Origin: Basidiobolus meristosporus CBS 931.73
Taxonomy: Eukaryota > Fungi > Basidiobolomycota
Direction: 5' to 3'
Assembly: GCA_002104905.1 (NCBI GenBank)
Contig: MCFE01000283.1
Location: forward strand, 1 to 64,000
Length of the DNA stretch: 64,000 nucleotides
The position numbers were made by a program, and so were the translations under genes. Within the stretch, counting starts at the first letter, position 1, and each line of letters begins with the position of its first letter. Below are positions 1 to 59,519 of this stretch, piece after piece. The notes beneath the pieces were generated by a model, which did no database searches, was not told the DNA's origin, and saw only the letters and a program-made list of their open reading frames with translations.

Positions 1-913
1 GCAAGTGCTGAAGCCACTGCACTGCTGTTGAGAATACTGAAGAGATAATAATATTTTGAGTATGACTACAATGAACCTTATGATCGTCTATGTAAGTATC
101 AGTAGGTAATAACTTGGCAAGTGGAATGCTGCTAGCTTGATGTGATAGATGCTCCATCTTACCATCAGGCGCCAAAGTAAGTTTATTTATCTATCATAGC
201 CATCATGGTTATCGAACAAACGCTCAAAAGATACTCTCCACAAAGCTCAGATGGTCATAAGATCTTATCCGTGCTGTGGGGCAGACGAGAGGTTGAATCA
301 GAATCCCGTATGGAAGCCGGTGAGGGACTACCGTGGTAGGGAGTGATGGAGGTTCAATAGGACGTAATCCCCGTCCCTCATCGTGTATCTCCCCGGTTTC
401 GTCCCCACGTCTTTAGAAGAGTCTTCGAGCACCCCGACCTCGTGGAACCTTTCACTAAGCACCGATACTTACATTTCATTTGGGATAAATACCTAAGTTG
501 GTAAAGCCTTTCACCTTATCTACACATCAACTGGGCGTGTCTTTCACCACCACTATCAGTAGTGGAAAGGCTATAAAGATTCGTGTTTTGTATAGATTTC
601 CACAAGAGCCAGTGAGTTATTTCACTCTACAAATATATATGCATGCATTCAATCCGGTTTTACTCTTACAGCAAATAGAAACTCAAATCACTCACACTAT
701 AACAAGTCGCTCATACTATACAATTGTAGCGCCCGTACTTCACGTGATTTTAGTAGCAAGGAACGGGCTCTCTTGGCTAGAAACCGAAGTAAGGGTGATA
801 CTCCCCTTCATTACCGTGGTAACTCTGCCTATCTCTCCTTGCCTACCGTCCCTATCCCCTTAAAGCTCTATACAGTCCTCTTCAGTATTCAATTCAGTGG
901 TGAAACACACACA

Positions 914-1176
914 ATGCGATTCAATACCCTTCTCTGCTCCTTAACCGTGTCAACATCAGCTCATGTCAACACGTGACCTGCGAACCGGTAGATATCACAA
1001 GCATCACTTCCGGTCCACCCGGCACCTCCGCCAAAGTAATCCTGTACCCTTCCCTGCAAGATTGCAACCGTAAAAGGAACATGACTGCTACGATTACCTC
1101 CAAACAACTCGAGAGATACATCGCGAAGTACGGAAAAGAAGTGACCGTTGGAGCAGTGAGAGTCTCTGCCAACTAG
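914..1176 (+). pseudogene. Frameshifted paralogue of the small secreted protein at 2893-3319
   Basis: ATG at 914 gives MRFNTLLCSLTVSTSAHVNT*. The homologous C-terminal part (SCQHVTCEPVD...GAVRVSAN*) is in another frame. It lacks the segment equivalent to 2958-3103 plus a further 18 nt. Confidence 0.8.
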
Positions 1177-1301
1177 CATTCTCAATAAGAGTCATAATCA
1201 CATGGCCATTCACTATCAATAGATAAAATGCAACGGTACTTTATTCAAGCACACAGACAAGCTGTGTTGTTGGAGTGAATGAAAGCCTTGATTCTTATTA
1301 T

Positions 1302-1751
1302 TCAGCAACCCCAGTCGCATCCACCATACCCTCCATATCCCCCGTAGCGTCCATATCCCCACCGACCTCCATAACCACCGTAGCGACCGTAGCGTCCTCG
1401 TCCCCAGTATCTGCCCCTCCGCCGCCCATATCCGCCGTATCTCCCCCATAGCTGGGCCTCTTCAGGATTGCCCTCCTCTTCCTCGACTCCTTGGTCGGCT
1501 TCTTGCTTATCCGAGAGGGTCTGATCGAACGTATTTCTTGACATCTGGCCGAGAATGCCATCGATGTAGTGTCGAATATTCTGCGCATCCTCTTCCTTAT
1601 TGGACGAGAACCTCTTCACCACTTGGCCGCTTTGTGGATCCCTATTGGAGATGGACGCGCTCGCTACATTTGTGCTTGACACGTCCACGGGACTTCCAAA
1701 GGCACTGACGGCCATTAGTAGAGCACAAGCTGCGGTAAGTTGTTTGTACAT
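1302..1751 (-). CDS. Secreted Gly/Arg/Tyr/Trp-rich prepro-peptide, copy 1 (149 aa)
   Basis: Intact ORF. Hydrophobic signal peptide (MYKQLTAACALLMAVSAFG), acidic pro-region with KR at 46-47, C-terminal 49 aa of GRY/GGY repeats ending GCDWGC. TATATAAA upstream (1791-1798, minus) and AATAAA downstream (1240-1245, minus). Confidence 0.9.
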   Translation of the reverse strand: MYKQLTAACALLMAVSAFGSPVDVSSTNVASASISNRDPQSGQVVKRFSSNKEEDAQNIRHYIDGILGQMSRNTFDQTLSDKQEADQGVEEEEGNPEEAQLWGRYGGYGRRRGRYWGRGRYGRYGGYGGRWGYGRYGGYGGYGGCDWGC

Positions 1752-1790
1752 TGTGAATGTTGAATACTCAAATAAAGCTCAGCACCAGCC

Positions 1791-1798
1791 TTTATATA
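1791..1798 (-). promoter_or_regulatory. TATA box of GGY gene copy 1 (equivalent at 4579-4586 for copy 2)
   Basis: TATATAAA on the minus strand ~40 nt upstream of the ATG in both paralogues. Confidence 0.65.
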
Positions 1799-2121
1799 CA
1801 GATACAAGATGGAGGTTGATTGATATCGCATCTAGGAAGCTTCAATCAAATGATGTAGTATATTTCGGAGGCAACCACCGCAGCCAAAGTACAAACACTC
1901 GATTTCTGTTAACAACAACACTAGTCGTGGTATAGAGATTTCTATACTATGTTATATGAAAGTGGCAAGTATCTCGTAAACGGAAATGGGTAGATAAACA
2001 GCGAGAGCCTCAAAAGAGAGCCTCAAAAATTGTCATTTATTTTGCATGATTTAGAGTTGCGGATGATCGCAATATTGGTAGTAAGCTTAACAGCATGATG
2101 TATTAAATTAGCAGCTCAAGC

Positions 2122-2215
2122 AAACCCTCCAAGTTCCCAGCGACCATCATAGTCCCCGAAGTGACCATAACGACCTCGTCACCTGCCCTCTCTGGTGCGA
2201 GCACCTTCTTCCTAC
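2122..2215 (-). pseudogene. Degenerate relic of a GGY-family gene
   Basis: Minus strand reads ...EGR*RGRYGHFGDYDGRW and aligns at nucleotide level with the RGRYWGRGRYGRYGGYGGRW segment of the intact genes. Confidence 0.6.
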
Positions 2216-2819
2216 ACACCGTTTCCTGGCTTTGGAGAAGAGATGGATACACTTGTCACATTAAAAAGTATTAGAACGATGGAAAAGTACTTGCGCATGG
2301 TGAGCACCAAAGGATAAACGGAGCCTACTCTTGTGTATCTTTTACGTTATCTATCCCACACTGGTCATCTTTTTGTTTGACCACCACCATTTGCCGTTCT
2401 TCACCAGAAGTCATCACCACCATCTGATTCCTTCGCTAGGAGATGAATGAGTGGGCTACAAATGGGTAATACCTATGTGTAACACTCAATACTAAGCATG
2501 TACTCAAAATTTAAAGCTGAAGTGTAACAGAAACTACAACACTTTATTTACGCCTAGATCGCACTCACCATAATCGGTGTTACGATACTAATGGAAGTGA
2601 GCAGGCAACGCATCCGTGCCACATATGCAAGCCAACACTAGTCATCCCAGTGTAATCGAACAATACAAGGAGCTTCGCTTGAGTTCGATAGTTTCTCTAA
2701 AAAAAAAGTGCTTAGCCCAAAGCGAATTTGGAAATTTCGGAGTGAATACATTAGTACAGAATGTTCCGCTTCATCATGGTAGCTCAGCCTGTCTCTCCTT
2801 ACAAGCCGGGCTAATTTCC

Positions 2820-2826
2820 TATAAAA
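2820..2826 (+). promoter_or_regulatory. TATA box of small secreted protein gene (equivalent at 5381-5387)
   Basis: TATAAAA ~70 nt upstream of ATG 2893, conserved in the duplicate. Confidence 0.6.
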
Positions 2827-2892
2827 TCGCTTACAATGCTCACCTTCTTCATCAGGCGTACACACAGAAGCACACACACCGAGGCACACACA

Positions 2893-3319
2893 ATGCGATT
2901 CAGTACCGTTTTCTGCTCCTTGACCATGGCACTACTAGCCTGCACAACAACTTCAGCACAATCCTCTAGTGCGTTACTAAGTATGTAATCAGTATATAAC
3001 TCAACTAGCCGCAACCAGTGAGCCTTACTAACCAAATACTTACAATGTAGAATTGGTGAATACTCCTGAAGATACTGCACAACAACTACCATTCTCAGCT
3101 GGCTCATGCCAACGCGTGACCTTTGGACCGGTGGATACTGCCAGCATCACCCCCGAATCACCCAGTACCTCTGCCCAAGCCATCTTGTATCCTTCTCTGC
3201 AAGATTGTAACAATCGCAGGAACAGGATTGCTGCTATAACATCCAAACAACTCGAGGTACATATCGCGAAGAACGGAAAAGAAGTGACTGTTGGAGCAGT
3301 AAGAGTATCTGTCAGCTAG
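2893..3319 (+). CDS. Small secreted protein, 118 aa, two exons (2893-2980, 3051-3319)
   Basis: Exon 1 encodes a signal peptide (MRFSTVFCSLTMALLACTTTSA). Splicing the 70-nt intron joins in frame (A|AA = Lys) to the 3053-3319 ORF (LVNTPED...GSCQRV...ILYPSLQDC...VSVS*). AATAAA at 3327-3332. Confidence 0.85.
2981..3050 (+). other. Spliceosomal intron, 70 nt
   Basis: Donor GTATGT at 2981, branch point TACTAAC at 3026-3032, acceptor TAG at 3048-3050; removal restores the reading frame. Confidence 0.88.
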
Positions 3320-3681
3320 CATTCTCAATAAACCGCATTGTTCAGTCAGGAGTTACAAAGAATGCATCCCATTAGATATACACAGCCAGAATGAAAGAGC
3401 AACTGTAACAGAGTAGTGAACGAAAGCCTAGAATATGCCTACATATCATTATGATTATCCAGCAAAAGATGAATGGTGTATATCCACCGTAGCAATACTA
3501 GTAGCAAGGAACGGGCTCACTTGGCTAGAAACTGAAGCAAGTGTGATACTCCCAGGAGTGATCAAATATTCCCCTTCATTGCCATGGTAACTCCGCCTGT
3601 CTCTCCTTGCCAACCGTGCTTATACCCTTATAGCTCTATACAGTCCTCTTCAATATTCAATTCAACGGTGAAACACACACA

Positions 3682-3962
3682 ATGCGATTCAATACCCTTC
3701 TCTGCTCCTTAACTGTGGCACTGCTAACCCGCATACCAACATCAGCTCATGCCAACACGTGACCTGCGAACCGGTAGATATCACAAGCATTACTTCCGGA
3801 CCGCCCAGCACCTTCGCCAAAGCGATCCCGTACCCTTCTCTGCAAGATTACAACATGAAAATGAACAGGATTGCTACAATTACCTCCAAACAACTCGAGA
3901 TACACATCACGAAGAACGGAAAAGATGTGACCTTTGGAGCAGTGAGCGCCTCTGCCAGCTAG
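3682..3962 (+). pseudogene. Frameshifted paralogue of the small secreted protein, second copy
   Basis: MRFNTLLCSLTVALLTRIPTSAHANT*; same deletion junction (..TCAGC|TCATGCC..) as the 914 copy, with the downstream frame shifted. Confidence 0.8.
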
Positions 3963-4089
3963 TACTCTCAATAAGAGTCATAATCACATGGTCATTCACT
4001 ATCGATAGATAAAATGCAACGGTACTTTATTCAAGCACACAGACAAGCTGTGTTGTTGGAGTGAATGAAAGCCTTGATCTCTTATTATT

Positions 4090-4539
4090 TCAGCAACCCC
4101 AGTCGCATCCACCGTACCCTCCATATCCCCCGTAGCGTCCATATCCCCACCGACCTCCATAACCACCGTAGCGACCGTAACGTCCTCGTCCCCAGTATCT
4201 GCCCCTCCGCCGCCCATATCCGCCGTATCTCCCCCATAGCTGGGCCTCTTCAGGATTGCCCTCCTCTTCCTGGACTCCTTGGTCGGCTTCTTGCTCATCC
4301 GAGAGGGTCTGATCGAACGCATTTCTTGACATCTGGCCAAGAATGCCATCGATGTAGTGTCGAATATTCTGCGCATCCTCCTCCTTGTTGGACGAGAACT
4401 TCTTCACCACTTGGCCGCTTTGTGGATCGCTATCGGAGATGGATGCGCTCGCTACATTTGTGCTTGACACATCCACGGGACTTCCAAAGGCACTGACGAC
4501 CATTAATAGAGCACAAGCTGCGGAAAGTTGTTTGTGCAT
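4090..4539 (-). CDS. Secreted Gly/Arg/Tyr/Trp-rich prepro-peptide, copy 2 (149 aa)
   Basis: Intact ORF; 9 aa differences from copy 1, all in the first 90 residues. TATA at 4579-4586, AATAAA at 4026-4031 (minus). Confidence 0.9.
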   Translation of the reverse strand: MHKQLSAACALLMVVSAFGSPVDVSSTNVASASISDSDPQSGQVVKKFSSNKEEDAQNIRHYIDGILGQMSRNAFDQTLSDEQEADQGVQEEEGNPEEAQLWGRYGGYGRRRGRYWGRGRYGRYGGYGGRWGYGRYGGYGGYGGCDWGC

Positions 4540-5453
4540 TGTGAATGTTGAATACTCAAAGAATGCTCAGCACCAGCATTTATATACAAAACCAGTTTTC
4601 GGCCAAGATGAAGGTTAACAAACATCGTATCTAGGAAGCTTCACAAAATTGATGGGTTTCAGTCGAATAATGTAGCATATTTCGGAGGCAAGCGCCGCAG
4701 CTAGCATACAACCATTTTTACTTCTGTCTTCCACAGCAATAAGCGACTAAACTAGCCATAGCAGAGAGATTCTTATATATATAATTGATATAAGTACAAA
4801 CACGTGGTTTCTGTCAACAACAATGCTAACCGTGGTAGAGAGATTCCTATACTATGTTATCTGAAAGTGGCAAGTATTTCTCTAGTAAACGGGAATGTGT
4901 AGAAATGCAGCGAGAGCCTCAAAAGAGAGCCTCAAAAATTGGCCTTTATCTTGCATAACTTGGATGATGGCAGTATTAATAGTAAGCTTGACAGCATGAT
5001 ATATTAGATTAGCAGCTCAACCAAAGGATGCCTCTCGTGTATCTTTTACGTTATCAATCACATGCTGGTTATCGTGTTCTTTCACAATCACATACTGTTA
5101 ATCGTGTTCTTTCACTACCACCAAGAGATGAACACATGGGCAATACTTATGTAACCGCCCAATATTATCCTCCATCCTTATACCTCGAACAAACTATGCA
5201 TGCACTTAGGACTAATAGCCTCAGTGTAACAGAAACTACGACACTTTATTTACGCCTAGATTGCGCTCACCAGTGCTTATATTCGGAGTGAATACAATAC
5301 TATGGTATATAATATAAGTTATTCCGCTTCAGCATCATGGTAGCTCAGCCTGTTTTTCCTTACAAGCCGGGCTAATTCCCTATAAAATCGCTTGTAATGT
5401 TCACCTTATTCATCAGGCATACACACAAAAGCACACACACAGAAGCACACACA

Positions 5454-5575
5454 ATGCGATTCAGTACCGTTTTCTGCTCCTTGGTCATGGTACTACTAGC
5501 CTGCATGTCAACTTCAGCACAATCCTCTAGTGCGCTACTAAGTATGTAACCAGTATACAACTCCACAAGTCGCAG
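5454..5575 (+). pseudogene. Truncated small secreted protein copy (exon 1 and start of intron only)
   Basis: MRFSTVFCSLVMVLLACMSTSAQSSSALL then GTATGT at 5542; homology to 2981-3050 stops at ~5575. Confidence 0.75.
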
Positions 5576-6371
5576 CTAAAGCGATCATTATGTTGTGGTG
5601 AGTTCACGAATTAGATATACTTCGCTGGGCACGCACCTTTATAACACTTTGTGAATTCTAAAAAACACAACGCCGTTCCTTCTGCAACAGGATGTTTATT
5701 CACTCGCCCAAACCAACTTGGGATGTGCTAGCTTTAGGTTCAAACACAATGGCTGTCAAGGCTTCACAAGCAGGCGAAGTCTCCAGAGGTGAGTCTATAT
5801 TCCTACGCATAGCTGGCTTCCCTTTAAACTTTGCTACTACTTCGCCATTCTCAATCGTTAGCTTCTGCAGCCCGTGTGTTGCTGAGAATACTCGCACACC
5901 GAGACAGCATGTCTTTCTATAGATACGTCTGCTGCATGTTGCATAGCATCAGCATGTCTATAGTGAAAATCTTCAATGACGCTCGAACATGCTTTGTAAT
6001 TTCGATTAGACGATTTACTATGCTTAGAGACTGATTCAGCTATTGTTCAGAACTGATTTCAATATTGTTTGTATTATGAATGTAACAACAACTATATGAG
6101 CAGTACTGATGATGCTGAATTTCTTTGTATAGCTTGAGTCACGATCGTTGAGAGCTTGCTTGCTACGTTGTGTTCATGAGTTGATGTAGATTGAGAAATT
6201 GCAGCAGACAATATCTGTAGATACCGACACATTTCACTCTGATGACTGAGAGTAGTTATTTAAAGATACATACATTCACTTTCTTAGCTGAGTCAGCTTT
6301 AGCAGTATTCAATTTGTATGTAATCGATGGCTAGCTTGATAGATATACAGTGACTGCTGATTGCTCAGAAT

Positions 6372-7050: not shown

Positions 7051-8499
7051 TGGAAAAGCCTATTTGTAATAACTTAATACTATTCTCCGTTCTTATACCT
7101 TGACGAAATGCATTCAATCAGGATGAGCGACAACGTCACCTCATTTATGCATAGAAGCCCTGGTTGCACTCAACCTAGCCCTCCTATTTCACATGAACAA
7201 AGTCTCGCGACGCTGGATACCCCTGCACTGGTACTGGTTATGAGCAGGCTATCACATTTGCATGCCAACAGTATTTACCCCTCTACCTTGCGCTGGCAAC
7301 TCCGCCATTGACCAAAGAATAGGTAAAAAATGATGGCAATACTATCATTGCTCGTAACAAGGCTTCTCTTGAAAGTAACAAATGCTAACTTCGACCTTTT
7401 CCAAGCAAATAGAGCTCTATACCATTGGATACATAGAAAAACGGCAATACAATCATTACTCCAATACAACCAAACCACTGGCTTCTCTTCACAGGTGCAA
7501 CTTGTGGTAGAGCCTGAAGCCAAACTTGCACCCACCCAAGTGTTCAAGATACTATGACACATAGAATGAATTATTTCCCTCTATATCCTCAATGGTCTCT
7601 GTAGCCCCCATAATGATCATAACTTATTTGTCCCCAGTATTTTCCCCTCCACCATCTGTCTCTTCAAAAGCTTGGTCTTTCAATAGCAGAAGATGTGAGT
7701 TGTGTGTCTGTATCATAGAGTCAATTTTGTCAAGAAAACCAAAGTATTTCCTTTATATCCAGATCAGTTACAAGGTGTTCTTGTGATCAAGGTGATTGGT
7801 ACTTGAGAATAGTATGGTGTAGGGGAAAAGAAAAAAGAGAAAAGGAGAAACACCTATCACCTATGTGTACAATGGGGGTTGATCAAGTTGCCACATATGT
7901 ACAAGATAGGAAAGGAGGTAAAGGAAAACAAATGTTGAGCACTGGTACACACACATAGGATAGATCAAGTTCTCAACATACACAAAAAATACTTAACCTT
8001 ATGTGAAAAGAAGATAAGGAATGTGTAAGGCAGCCATTACAAAATTGATTCATATCCTCACAACAATGCAATCAGGCCAAGCTTGCAAAGAAGGGGGATA
8101 CTGCTAAGAGCAATACGCATATCAATGGTTGAGCAAGTTGTCATTGTACCTACACAGGGTAAATGAAGGTAAGATCCTCCACACACTAATGGTTGATCAA
8201 GTCATTAACATACCTAGAAGGCTCATGATGTACATGCTATTTTTACCAATCTGGAGCAAGACACCAATTGTAAACAGCCAGTGATGCAATCCAGTGCATG
8301 CAGATTATGGTAACTTGATGATGCTTGCCAAGCCACTGTACAGACTGCTCATGTGCCAGAAAGCTGCAGATTAGTGCAGTTAGATATATCAGCAGTATTG
8401 GGGCAGTTTTGTGGGGGATAATGAGGGTGAGTGGGTGGATATAGGGTCTTGATATATCTCAAGTTGCCTATATGCTTAATTAAAGCATTGCTCTGATGA

Positions 8500-40509: not shown

Positions 40510-41451
40510 TTTTCCTTGCTTTATTTACTCATCATAATGCTCCAGACACATTTCTTGCAGTGGATGTCTTCTTGTATGAACATACTGTGCATTAATAAGT
40601 ATCTTAACTATTTTACCTATTCTGCTGTTTGCACCTATATATTACTTTCCTCTGTATCTACCTGCCAATATGCTGAATCTCTTCAAATATCCAAATGTGT
40701 GCTCTACCCTTACTCTCAAATGATAAAATATCTCATTGTAGAGCTTCTGCTTCCTGCTAAGCACACCATTCCTTGGCTTCCTATAAGCTGTAATACATCC
40801 TAATCTCTGACAATCCTCTCCTATATAGGCTAAGTCTGCCATACATTTCTCCCCTCTACTGAATTCAGGATGATTCTCTACCCAGAGTGCTTTGTCATGC
40901 CTACTTGCAGCAAATGGCCCACTAAACCAGATGATGTTACCCTCAATGTTAGACAGTGCTTGAAACTTCACATGGTGTGCCTTGTACTTGCCAGAATAAA
41001 AGTGCCTCTGCCCTCTAGAAGGTCTGTTAATCCTCACCAGGAAGGTATCCAAAATACTCCTGATATGGAACCTGTTGCTGAACACTCTGGGATATGGAAG
41101 TCTATTGGAGCTTCTGAACCTAGTATTCCAAGCTTGCTCTAAGTCATTCATACCCTCTGCAAGGTGGTTCTCCATTGCTGTCAGCTGGGAATGAAAGCTT
41201 CTAGGACTTTTGTTGCCATGGATGGTGGGATGAAACCTTGTAGGGCAATAGTTCTTGTAATAGCAGAAAAGCTTAACAAGGGATCTCCTTGAGTAGATTG
41301 GGATTGATGGTCCACAGTACTTGGTATAGATCTCCTCCAGTGTGTCAAAAGGAAATCCAGTGGTAGTAATGGGATTGATGAGAAAAGACCATTCAGATGA
41401 GTAAGTCATATTAAAATTGATGGATGATTGTATGGAGGCGGTTTGAATCAA
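40510..41451 (-). pseudogene. IS5/PIF-Harbinger-type DDE transposase (269-aa ORF 40642-41451 plus ~40 in-frame codons after a premature TAA)
   Basis: LDT, FYSGKYKAH, SRHD, ADLAY, YN..RVRVEHTFGYLKRFSIL motifs; the frame continues IGKIVKILINAQYVHTRRHPL after the stop. Confidence 0.88.
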
Positions 41452-56324: not shown

Positions 56325-57700
56325 TTCTCCTCTTTTGAGGGGCACTCCTAAAGCTTTTGGCTTTGGCTTTTTAGGGGATATCTGGTGGAATAGGGCAACT
56401 AGATCTTGGCAGTATGTTAGGTTTGCTGCTGGTTCCCAAGTTTGATCATTTGGGCTGTAACCAACCCAATCTACCAGATAGTGAAGTTAGGATCTTATGT
56501 ACTTTCAATACAACACTTGCTGAGCTTCAAACTCTTAGTGTTTGTCCACTTGGATGGCTGGGGGACTTGCTGGGTGCTGGTTGGGTAGAGTACTTTTGTT
56601 GAATGGTTTTAGGAGGGATACATGGAATGTGCCATGAATTTTCATACTTGGTGGCAACTGTAGTTGGTATACAATTGGACTAAGTTTCTTCTTGAGCTTG
56701 AATGGACCTAGTCTCTTGTAGTCTAATTTGTCATAAGGGTGGCTGGTTGTAATATTTCTTCTCAAGAGCCATACTAAATCTCCTTCATTAAGCTTGGGGC
56801 TAGGCCGCCGTTTGTTGTCTGCAAACTTCTTGTACCCCTCATGTGCTAAGGATAGTTCTTTCTTGAGTGTTTCTTGGATTTCTAGAATTGTTGATGCATG
56901 TTCAGCTGCTGGGGGGCTCATAGTGTTTGTTGGGATCTGAATATCAAATATGCAGACAAAAACCATCATTTGCATAGAATGTAGTGAGACCTGTTGCACC
57001 ATGACATGAGTTGTTGTAGGCAAACTCTGCAAGTGGTAGCAGTTGGGTCTAGTTGTCCTGCTGATAGTTAATAGAGCACCAGAGGTAATGCTCAGGGATC
57101 TGGTTAATTCTCTCAGTCTGGCCATCTGACTGTGGATGCAAGCAGTTGAGAGCTTGACTTGCACACCAAGATATTGGATGAAGTGTTTCCAGAATTTTGA
57201 TGTGAACTGGGGTCCTCTATGTGATACAATGTCATTGGGGATATCATGGAGCCTGAAAATGTTCTTGATCACTAAGTGGGTAGTCTCCTTTGCATCTATG
57301 TTCTTTGAGCAGGGAATGAAGTGAGCCATCTTGGTGAGCCAATCTGCCACTACTAGGATTAAATTGAATTGGTTAGATTCTGGGAGGTCAGTGATGAAGT
57401 CCATTGAAAGTGATTTCCATTGCTGGTCAGGGATTGGCAAGGGTTGGAGAAGCCCATATGGCTGGTGTCTAGCAGATTTTACACAGTTACATGTATCACA
57501 GGATTGGAGGTACTCCTTGACAAGAGATATCATCTTGGGTCACCAGAAGTCCCTCTTGATTGCATTCAGGGTTTTGGCAGTACCAAAATGTCCTGCAGCC
57601 ATTGAATCATTGCAAGAATGGATGATATCCAACTGGGTATCAAGGTCTGGAACAAACAGTTGGTACTTGTGGTAGATGATGTCATTGACTAGATGTAGGT
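56325..57700 (-). pseudogene. pol: Integrase with C-terminal chromodomain
   Basis: ORF 56535-57533 (WKSLSMDFITDLP, GPQFTSKFW, GPY/F module LGPFKL). In frame after stops: EFEAQQVL..LHYLVDWVGYSPNDQTWEPAANL (chromodomain). Confidence 0.9.
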
Positions 57701-57773
57701 GCTTGTCTCAGGTTGAGTACTTTTGGGATGGTAAAGTACTCAAGGTTCTTTTGGTCACAGAAGATCTTTACTT

Positions 57774-59519
57774 TTAGGCTTCACCATCAAGGTATTGTCT
57801 CCATTGTTCAAAGGCAACAATGATTGCAAGTAGTTCCTTATCATAGATATCATAGTCTACTTCAGCTGGAGTAAATTTCCAGGAGTAGAATGCAATAGGG
57901 TGTAGTACATTCTTGTCATTGTACGGAGAAAGGACTGCACCAAATGCAAAGTCAGAGGCATCAGTTTCTATGATGAAAGGTTTCTCAGGGTCAGGGTAAG
58001 CAAGCTGGGGAGCATACAGGAAGGATTTCTTGATGGAATTAAAGGACTTGGACTGTTCCTCATTCCAGGCAAAAGGCAGATTCTTCTGGGTGAGCTTTGT
58101 CAAGGGAGTTGCTATCTTGGAGTAGTTGGCTATAAATCTACAATAGAATTTGGCAAATCCAAGGAAGGACTGCACTTCTTTTACAGAACAGGGAGTTTTC
58201 CATGACTGGATGGCTTCTACTTTCATGGGGTCCATTTGTGTTCCATTTGAGCTGATAAGATAACCTAAGCACTCAACTTCTTTCTGGTCAAACTCACATT
58301 TCTCCAGTCTGGCATAGTGGCCAGCAGTGTCAAGTTTGGTTAAGACTCTCTTGACATGGGAATTATGTTCTTCTTGGGTCTTAGAGTAGATCAAGATGTC
58401 ATCAAGGTAGATAACCACAAATTGGCCAAGGCATTCACAGAATATGTCATTCATCAGGTGTTGAAAGATAGCTGGGGCATTGGTGAGACTAAATGGCATA
58501 ACTGTATACTCAAAATGACCATATCTTGTTCTGAATGCAGTTTTCCATTCATCACCAGGCTTGATCCTGACAAGGTTATATGCTCCTCTGAGGTCAATCT
58601 TAGTAAATACTTTGGCAGCAGACAGTTGATCCAACAGGGTGTTGATCAGGGGCAATGGATACTGGTTCTTGATTGTGGTCTTATTCAGTGCACAGTAGTC
58701 TACACACACTCTTAGGGTACCATCCTTTTTTTTGACAAAGAGGATTGGGGCACCAGCTGGGGACTTAGAGTGCTGAATAAAACCTTTCTGGAGGTTTTCT
58801 TGAGTATAGGCATGGAGTTCTTTCAACTTGGGTTGCAAGAGGTTGTAAATAGGACCAAAAGGTGGGGCTTTTCCTTCTTCAAGGTCAATGGGACAATCAT
58901 AGGGTCCATGAGCTGGGAGTAGCTTGGCTTTCTTCTTGTCAAAGACATGGGCAAACTCTTGATACTTGGCAGATATTCCATTGAAGGGGGTTCCCTCAGT
59001 GATAATGGGCTCCTGGGTCTGGGGTAGCTTAGGAAAAGATACTTCTTTACCTGAAAAATCAGGTTGTTTCATAAAGTTGACATGGTGGATTCTGGGGAAT
59101 GTCAGGATTTTGGTCTTCCAGGTGATAGCTAGGTCATGGTGACTAAGCCATGAGCTTCCAAGGACTACGGAGTAGTGGGGAGAGTTGATGATGTTGAAGG
59201 CTAGTGTCTTGTGGTGACCAGTACTGGACAACTGGAGTAGACATGTCTCATGGGTTACAGCACCAGAAGAGTGGGACCTTCCATCAATAACTTCTACTTG
59301 GACAGGACAGGATTTCAGGACAGTGGGGATTTGGTGCCTCTGGACAAATAACTGGTCAATGAAACAGGAGGAGGCACCAAAATCTATGAGGGCAAGTATG
59401 CAGACAGGGCTGGATTCAGGGAGGTGGATGTTGACAGGCATTCTTAAGGACTGGATGGACTTGTTAGCGTATGATGTTTCTTGAATGTGCTGGATCTTCA
59501 ATGGAGGGTCCAGTTGCAA
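57774..59519 (-). pseudogene. pol: Protease-RT-RNase H, 581-aa ORF
   Basis: LIDFGAS (mutated DSG), PAGAPILFVKKKDG, KIDLRGAY, YLDD, ETDASD; stop before the end of RNase H. Confidence 0.95.

Follow-up and report, generated by a model that had tools for sequence, protein, structure and literature searches.

Introduction

In the alpha-defensins and in frog skin antimicrobial peptides, the cationic mature peptide is neutralised by an anionic propiece, an arrangement termed “net charge balance” (PMC7073735, PMC2803202). The NLP and CNC peptides of C. elegans are secreted, Gly/Tyr-rich antifungal peptides that derive from small gene clusters (PMC2453101). A third point of comparison is Mfp-3, a cationic, self-coacervating protein of 5–7 kDa with Gly at 25–29 mol%, Dopa plus Tyr at ∼20–27 and Trp at up to 6 (PMC5132118). 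Here we analyze two genes, designated GYR copy 1 and copy 2, from contig MCFE01000283.1 of Basidiobolus meristosporus CBS 931.73 (positions 1–64,000, forward strand; this whole 64,000-nucleotide (nt) stretch is hereafter “the window”). Each encodes a signal-like N-terminus, an acidic middle region and a 49-residue cationic tail rich in Gly, Arg, Tyr and Trp. We read them, with a probability of roughly one half, as two functional members of a family encoding charge-masked precursors of a secreted cationic peptide of antimicrobial or defence type.

The layout of these proteins appears to be that of a charge-neutralised cationic precursor, yet they would belong to no known family. As in the alpha-defensin and frog prepropeptides, a signal, an anionic propiece and a cationic mature part seem to follow one another with counter-balanced charge (here −9 and +9). 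The GYR proteins differ in having neither the six-Cys framework nor a KR/RR cut point, have no homology to these peptides, and end in a Gly-rich tail that, unlike them, is predicted to be disordered. With NLP-29 and the caenacins (CNC) they have in common small, putatively secreted precursors, a cationic Gly/Tyr(/Arg/Trp)-rich product and recently expanded tandem clusters (PMC2453101). The nematode genes amount to a handful, whereas GYR genes number many dozens; the nlp-29 cluster is under positive selection (PMC2453101), whereas the GYR tail is under strong purifying selection; and, compared with the nematode peptides, the GYR family has in addition a charge-matched acidic region of 81 residues and ends in CDWGC. 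Mfp-3 is likewise a small, secreted, Gly/Tyr-rich, cationic peptide that contains Trp and has many gene variants, and it coacervates. It is Asn-rich, uses both Lys and Arg, lacks Cys and repeats, is polymorphic and depends on 3,4-dihydroxyphenylalanine (DOPA), whereas the GYR tail is nearly invariant, can be divided into five-residue units, ends in CDWGC, is joined to an acidic half and has sister families without Tyr.

The known fungal ribosomal antimicrobial peptides almost all have cysteine-stabilised folds (the defensin-like plectasin and copsin; AFP/PAF). If our reading is right, the GYR genes would represent a new kind of fungal defence arsenal, a linear Gly-rich Arg/aromatic peptide with a charge-matched acidic propiece, and would bear on how Basidiobolus, an early-diverging gut fungus, holds its place among gut bacteria. 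The analysis contributes four elements: a test of selection domain by domain, a connection of the GYR family to the RW/RF sister families by junction and charge scaling, the tail-less homologue in B. ranarum, and the assignment of the window copies to distinct sub-lineages.

Gene structure and sequence

The N-terminus of both window proteins is hydrophobic (MYKQLTAACALLMAVSAFG). It consists of MYK, a 14-residue hydrophobic core and A-F-G↓S, which obeys the −3/−1 rule. Between this signal-like part and the tail lie 81 residues rich in Ser, Glu, Asp and Gln, ending in EEEEGNPEEAQ in copy 1 and in QEEEGNPEEAQ in copy 2. The last 49 residues, LWGRYGGYGRRRGRYWGRGRYGRYGGYGGRWGYGRYGGYGGYGGCDWGC, are identical in the two proteins. 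Their composition is G21 R10 Y10 W4 C2 L1 D1 (Gly 43%, Tyr 20%, Arg 20%, Trp 8%), so that 45 of the 49 residues are G, R, Y or W; net charge is +9, the isoelectric point 10.2 and the mass 5.6 kDa. Both cysteines lie in the C-terminal CDWGC (C-x-x-x-C), and the tail can be read as loose five-residue units ([W/Y]-G-x-x-x), one stretch of which is WGRGR verbatim. In copy 1 the acidic region carries −9, and the protein without its signal therefore has a net charge of 0. Both open reading frames (ORFs) encode 149 residues on the minus strand. Their translations match the strings and the tail composition given in the first-pass annotation, and the architecture it described, with a signal-like start, an acidic half and a cationic tail ending in CDWGC, is seen in both ORFs.

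The two coding sequences differ at 17 of 450 nt. Fifteen of these differences fall in the first 300 nt, where they cause eight amino-acid changes, and the two in the tail are both synonymous third-position changes. P0014, an annotated protein of B. meristosporus CBS 931.73 on a contig of 103,448 nt, is identical to the copy 1 protein. The intact copy 2 ORF was absent from the protein collection searched; the public model at its site, P0004 (121 amino acids, labelled “partial”, with an MCQAQ start and an out-of-frame end), looks mis-built.

Two types of full-length gene were distinguished, type A (149 amino acids, to which both window copies belong) and type B (139 amino acids). The TATATAAA box found upstream of both window genes, a TATA box, is kept in 14 of 15 type A copies, and in type B genes a TATATA box lies about as far upstream. 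The AATAAA signal is present in every one of the 15 type A copies, and the start context CACAATG is common to both types. Because 45 of 49 tail residues are G, R, Y or W, and because frame, promoter and poly(A) signal are conserved at many loci, the ORF is far beyond what chance would produce. An AlphaFold2 model from a 13-sequence alignment gave a mean predicted local distance difference test score (pLDDT) of 46 and a predicted template modelling score of 0.18, with a weak hairpin and a long helix in the acidic region and no fold in the tail (pLDDT 39–41). The low tail values are consistent with a flexible peptide.

Family size and arrays

The first-pass annotation had called the gene duplicated. 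Two copies do lie in the window, but they are part of a large arrayed family and come from distinct sub-lineages. All 13 cluster representatives that a word-indexed search of 5.8 billion proteins brought up came from B. meristosporus CBS 931.73. Of the two main 90% clusters, one has 28 and the other 11 annotated proteins; these are spread over at least 13 contigs and give at least 39 models. For a survey of copies, seven 20-kb loci were fetched from other contigs. Each holds 6–9 copies on one strand, arranged head-to-tail at a spacing of 2–3 kb. Full-length ORFs at these loci number 20 (13 of type A and 7 of type B), or 22 with the window pair; the remaining copies are signal-less “MCQAQ” forms, signal-less forms of 83 amino acids, or truncated or frameshifted versions.

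Several arrays run to the ends of their contigs. Sequencing run X1, which contains the gene, assembles to ∼105 Mb of contigs, the longest of 58.9 kb, and 1295 short variant contigs from it align to window positions 700–5700. Because so many variants stack on a ∼5-kb stretch, the assembled copy count is probably an underestimate. The runs that contain a GYR gene look like genomic DNA of the same sample. In runs X5 and X6, from other organisms, only 38 nt matched (2470–2507), outside the GYR gene.

Over coding sequence and flanks, copies 1 and 2 are 93.9% identical. Copy 1 is ∼97% identical to seven copies at other loci, and the nearest kin of copy 2 is L001:7197-7646, at 96.9%. Since each is closer to copies elsewhere, the two represent established sub-lineages rather than a simple local duplicate. 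A type B gene at L004:10001 bears a type A tail and 3′ flank; this mosaic shows that paralogues have exchanged sequence. The GYR genes thus appear to form a large, tandemly amplified, lineage-specific family that evolves by birth and death.

Selection and reading frame

The 22 full-length genes were aligned by codon. Within the tail, variable sites are distributed 10/2/24 over codon positions 1, 2 and 3, and the ratio of nonsynonymous to synonymous substitution rates (dN/dS) for the tail is 0.10 among type A genes, 0.09 among type B genes and 0.06 between types. In the comparison of type A with type B, tail dS is 0.53 and tail dN 0.035, while dN in the acidic region is 0.43; the acidic half evolves about 10 times faster than the tail yet remains acidic. 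From the 10/2/24 pattern and the low dN/dS it follows that the Gly/Arg/Tyr frame is the translated one and that the exact tail sequence is under selection. Purifying selection on the tail is strong, with the exact sequence mattering beyond mere composition.

Note that an alternative frame is open over the tail DNA in both window copies (Table 1), and that public models P0002, P0006 and P0009–P0013 take the tail DNA in the other frame (…GGDTADMGGGGADTGDED…). As a coding frame it was ruled out by the same codon-position pattern and by dN/dS of 0.06–0.10. The models concerned are, on this evidence, frameshifted pseudogenes or prediction artefacts.

The same data bear on whether the arrays are a useless cassette whose copies multiply through repeat-driven growth in repeat-rich regions while their ORFs decay. 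The many truncated, signal-less and frameshifted copies and relics would be expected under such a process, as would the position of arrays at contig ends and the transposon genes in the same window. We nevertheless regard it as very improbable: tail dN/dS stays at 0.06–0.10 with dS reaching 0.53, and 22 full-length ORFs retain promoter and poly(A) signals, which together argue against neutral decay. By this evolutionary criterion the GYR family is functional; it is undescribed and, so far, appears confined to one species.

Relatives and charge matching

A profile built from 13 family members was run with HMMER against 1.84 billion representative proteins at E≤0.001. Its 15 hits were paralogues from B. 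meristosporus, three informative matches and a handful of low-complexity look-alikes, namely metagenomic proteins, a yeast helicase tail and an insect suex-1-like protein. Neither this search nor that of the 5.8 billion proteins found a relative with a GYR-type tail outside B. meristosporus, or any sequence relative among molluscs or Mfp-3 proteins, and the profile search found no relatives among the nematode NLP/CNC peptides. Pfam and NCBIfam scans of the GYR protein gave no match above noise, and literature searches found no description of the family. The earlier statement that no described fungal family has this architecture therefore stands, the profile search having returned only Basidiobolus proteins and low-complexity look-alikes.

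Some partial resemblances were considered and rejected. Plant glycine-rich proteins (Pfam PF07172, GRP) have a similar secreted, Gly/Tyr-rich, low-complexity region, but the GYR protein, with a score of 10.4 bits (E 1.1), falls short of the membership cut-off of 30. Protein language-model look-alikes, an oomycete “glycine-rich protein” (0.82) and a bacteriocin/sonorensin (0.60), were both within the noise range of the tool.

A precursor of a ribosomally synthesised and post-translationally modified peptide (RiPP), dikaritin-like or of the radical S-adenosylmethionine (radical-SAM) type, would also have a signal peptide and could have a repetitive Tyr-rich C-terminal region, and automatic naming in UniRef has labelled two family members (P0022, P0026) “RSAM-associated Gly-rich repeat protein”. 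That name found no backing in NCBIfam scans, in which P0022, P0026, P0003 and copy 1 matched no radical-SAM-associated Gly-rich model at E≤10. There are no repeated KR-flanked core peptides, and the conserved unit is the 49-residue tail in full rather than a short core. Genes called within the arrays have no Pfam match, and no DUF3328/UstYa, tyrosinase, radical-SAM or methyltransferase gene is present there; the sole Pfam match in the seven loci belongs to a protein kinase gene next to the L004 array. Given the NCBIfam result and the lack of a recognisable modifying enzyme in the arrays, the RiPP reading was set aside as scarcely credible.

One informative match, B. ranarum K7432_013667 (P0040), is homologous to the GYR proteins in their signal and acidic region, where 103 residues align at 32% identity (E 8e-13). 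The protein stops once the acidic stretch is over, and the DNA downstream encodes no cationic tail in any frame, which suggests that the acidic “pro-region” may have existed as a small secreted protein before the cationic tail was gained. This tail-less homologue, at L008:3185-3532 (JASJQH010008265.1), adjoins a sulfotransferase gene.

The matches P0041 and P0043, both from B. meristosporus, define a sister family that is likewise arranged in tandem arrays (L009 and L010; Table 1). It resembles the GYR family in its signal region, junction, cationic aromatic/Gly/Arg tail, tandem arrays and charge matching. The two families have in common the signal region and an A-x-A-S-(I/V)-S motif (E 6e-06) and the junction PEEA(E/Q)LWGR, which in the sister form reads …DPEEAELWGR…. 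The sister family differs in its pro-regions, which are longer (134–159 residues) with a very acidic terminal block, and in its tails, (WGRGR)5–7, which vary in repeat number and contain neither Tyr nor Cys. In many L009 members a His/Lys-rich block (HHKSKKVYKKHSKKHHKK…) is inserted after a KR site, at L010:6811-7365 the tail is of Arg/Phe/Gly type (+18, again without Tyr or Cys), and several members are frameshifted inside the tail. Since the GYR tail is divisible into five-residue units and holds WGRGR verbatim, the tails of the two families are plausibly homologous. The theme of the superfamily would then be a tail of Arg, aromatic residues and Gly preceded by an acidic block.

Charge was compared across these proteins. 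In 26 GYR ORFs that retain both junction and tail, of which four lack the signal or are truncated, charges run from −7 to −12 in the acidic region and from +7 to +9 in the tail. In kin with (WGRGR)n tails, a tail of +13 or +14 is paired with an acidic region of −14 to −16; in the sister subtype with the His/Lys insert, charges are less balanced. The −9/+9 match and its scaling in the sister family therefore fit the idea, put forward in the first-pass annotation, that an acidic pro-piece neutralises the tail. That proposal is qualified in one respect, as no canonical cut site is found at Q↓L.

Proposed processing and function

From the sequence we infer, as follows, that the GYR peptide is secreted and cleaved, where the cut falls, that a disulfide forms, and what the peptide targets and does. 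The N-terminal signal peptide, cut after G19, would route the protein into the secretory pathway. There the acidic 81-residue middle (−9) would offset the +9 tail, and the neutral pro-form would spare the membranes, wall and secretory cargo of the producer. An endoprotease other than Kex2 would then cleave at or near the invariant junction (P/S)EE(A/T)x↓LWGR. The freed 49-mer would be disordered and would present Arg and Tyr/Trp on a Gly backbone, with a C-D-W-G-C disulfide loop probably capping its C-terminus. It would bind and perturb the anionic envelopes of microbes that compete with the fungus in dung, litter and the contents of the gut.

The sister tails bear on the chemistry. As these lack Tyr and Cys, selection would keep the cationic-aromatic character across the superfamily and not DOPA or disulfide chemistry, and they appear to favour a membrane-active peptide of cationic-aromatic type. 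Sequences rich in Arg and Trp are a well-known antimicrobial pharmacophore. With tails of Tyr, Trp and Phe type occurring naturally, each behind a propiece whose charge tracks its own, the superfamily would provide a ready structure-activity series.

Nematode NLP/CNC peptides are flanked by basic processing sites; unlike them, the GYR family has no conserved basic site. KR occurs at most once per protein and in some type A copies only. Kex2 maturation as a conserved route was thus ruled out by the lack of a conserved dibasic site and by type B proteins having none.

Several observations weigh against a defence peptide. At the junction, EEA(Q/E/D/G)↓LWGR, there is no canonical cleavage site and no basic residue precedes it; the residue before the Leu varies among Q, E, D and G. 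Type B paralogues have no dibasic site anywhere, and the KR/KK at residue 46 and RRR at residues 110–112 are found in type A only. The putative mature part is conserved and the pro-part variable, the opposite of what is reported for certain host-defence families, such as the positively selected nlp-29 cluster (PMC2453101). Many dozens of genes yield a near-identical product, as if a bulk material had been amplified for dosage. Decay is seen in many copies, which have lost the signal (“MCQAQ”) or are truncated or frameshifted. Finally, with ten Arg-X bonds, the tail would be an easy substrate for trypsin in the gut.

Some of these points would fit a bulk extracellular material, that is, a wet adhesive or cross-linked matrix such as the adhesive of the capilliconidium beak or a component of the spore wall. 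We consider this unlikely, though less so than the other alternatives. Either the freed tail or the uncleaved polyampholyte would coacervate through Arg-aromatic contacts and charge pairing and be cured through Tyr (DOPA or dityrosine) and the Cys pair. That many dozens of genes specify one invariant product, and that purifying selection on it is strong, would suit a dosage-amplified structural product. The composition of the tail resembles that of Mfp-3 (PMC5132118), and Basidiobolaceae form capilliconidia whose beak bears adhesive material (PMC13370150). Mfp-3 is, however, highly polymorphic, with 30–35 variants (PMC5132118), whereas the GYR tail is nearly invariant. Sister tails that follow the same junction without Tyr or Cys indicate that Tyr/Cys curing is not a conserved principle, and no tyrosinase, peroxidase or other modifying enzyme is present among the called genes of the seven arrays.

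In its uncleaved form this alternative has a specific version, which we likewise judge improbable: a self-neutralised two-block polyampholyte (−9/+9) that would phase-separate on secretion into a glue or matrix, for instance on the capilliconidial cap; over 50 near-identical genes would supply it, and Tyr and the terminal Cys pair would cure it. An exactly neutral two-block charge and the lack of a canonical cleavage site fit such a self-coacervating molecule. If the adhesive reading were true, the family would offer a simple, genetically encoded, non-animal wet-adhesive system, and the polyampholyte version would be the first fungal counterpart of the coacervate adhesives of mussels and sandcastle worms. 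The first-pass annotation had left the choice between antimicrobial peptide and adhesive open; of the present data, the sister tails would favour the former, and the conserved mature part with its variable pro-part speaks against a classic arms-race peptide. On either reading the genes would allow charge masking of cationic peptides to be tested, and likewise the birth and death of secreted-peptide genes in arrays.

The arrays could also encode an effector directed at an animal host or prey. Basidiobolus inhabits the guts of amphibians and reptiles, Arg/aromatic-rich peptides can be cell-penetrating as well, and effector families are commonly lineage-specific, amplified and arrayed. In such a role the tail would bind polyanions of mucus, epithelium or cuticle, or enter cells, and would serve gut residence or attachment to insects. 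The secreted-protein architecture and the lineage-specific, rapidly amplified arrays, with many pseudogenes near contig ends, would agree with this. Effector families, though, usually diversify their active part, whereas the GYR tail is almost invariant, and a tail so sensitive to trypsin would be poorly suited to the gut. We think an effector role quite unlikely; at the sequence level nothing separates it from the antimicrobial reading.

Other features of the window and arrays

Features located in the window, and the sister-family arrays on other contigs, are listed in Table 1. The GYR genes lie in a tandem segmental repeat that also carries a partner gene and relics. The partner gene is unrelated to the GYR gene, lies on the opposite strand and is convergent with it. 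Its signal begins MRFSTVFCSL…, and the second exon encodes a body of ∼85 amino acids with two Cys and a GAVRVSVS end. It is 97% identical to annotated P0051 and has no Pfam match. Its B. ranarum homologue (P0053, 76% identical) lies on a contig of 3.5 kb that has no GYR gene. Since it matches no family and its B. ranarum homologue has no GYR neighbour on that contig, the partner gene gives no functional clue, and the simplest reading is that it was co-amplified through adjacency.

Table 1. Positions of GYR genes, associated elements and sister-family arrays (window coordinates unless a contig is named).
Feature	Position	Strand	Details and basis
GYR-tail gene copy 1, type A	1302–1751 (stop included)	minus	149 amino acids, intronless; ORF translation
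Parts of copy 1	signal-like 1695–1751; acidic 1452–1694; cationic tail 1305–1451; stop 1302–1304	minus	
TATATAAA box, copy 1	1791–1798	minus	40–47 nt upstream of ATG
AATAAA poly(A) signal, copy 1	1240–1245	minus	∼60 nt past stop
GYR-tail gene copy 2, type A	4090–4539 (stop included)	minus	149 amino acids, intronless; ORF translation
Parts of copy 2	signal-like 4483–4539; acidic 4240–4482; tail 4093–4239	minus	
TATATAAA box, copy 2	4579–4586	minus	40–47 nt before ATG
AATAAA poly(A) signal, copy 2	4026–4031	minus	∼60 nt past stop
Alternative open frame over tail DNA (…GGDTADMGGGGADTGDEDATVATVVMEVGGDMDATGDMEG…)	1298–1588 and 3999–4376	minus	
Tandem segmental repeat, ∼2.8-kb unit	798–5574		carries GYR gene, partner gene and relics; direct-repeat families D1–D10, spacings 2561–2909 nt
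Decayed junction and tail relic (…EEGARTREGR, stop, RGRYGHFGDYDGRWELGGFA, stop)	2122–2200	minus	tblastn and translation
Second decayed tail relic (…RWWRGKYWGQISYDHYGGYRDH, stop, GYRGK)	7583–7663	minus	tblastn and translation
Partner gene, apparently intact	2893–3319	plus	signal exon MRFSTVFCSLTMALLACTTTSAQSSSALL; GTATGT…TAG intron ∼2982–3049
Short-form partner copy, probably a pseudogene	914–1176	plus	convergent with copy 1, stops 126 nt apart; signal 914–976, body 973–1176 one base out of frame
Short-form partner copy	3700–3962	plus	convergent with copy 2; same frame break
Orphan partner signal exon (MRFSTVFCSLVMVLLACMSTSAQSSSALLSM, stop)	5454–5549	plus	at repeat-unit edge
Sister-family array L009	MCFE01000402.1, 2.9–16.7 kb		(WGRGR)n tails
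Sister-family array L010	MCFE01001163.1, 0.7–7.4 kb		(WGRGR)n tails

The window also holds a Ty3/gypsy-type pol region at 56535–59519 (minus), with protease, reverse transcriptase, RNase H, integrase and a Tf2-type SH3 domain, and a DDE_Tnp_4 (PIF/Harbinger-like) transposase ORF at 40642–41451; the array in the window thus lies in transposon-rich DNA. Two further elements were seen in arrays at other loci. An ORF of ∼240 amino acids (MHGALIALSPG…) recurs inside arrays on the opposite strand (L001:14407-15167, L005:3009-3769 and L006:6591-7310); no family matches it (lowest Pfam E 0.029), and the public model bridges an in-frame stop in two of the three copies. At L003:11069-11314 (minus), a called gene consists of tandem NGASTGHQRGI units and is probably a translated minisatellite between array units.

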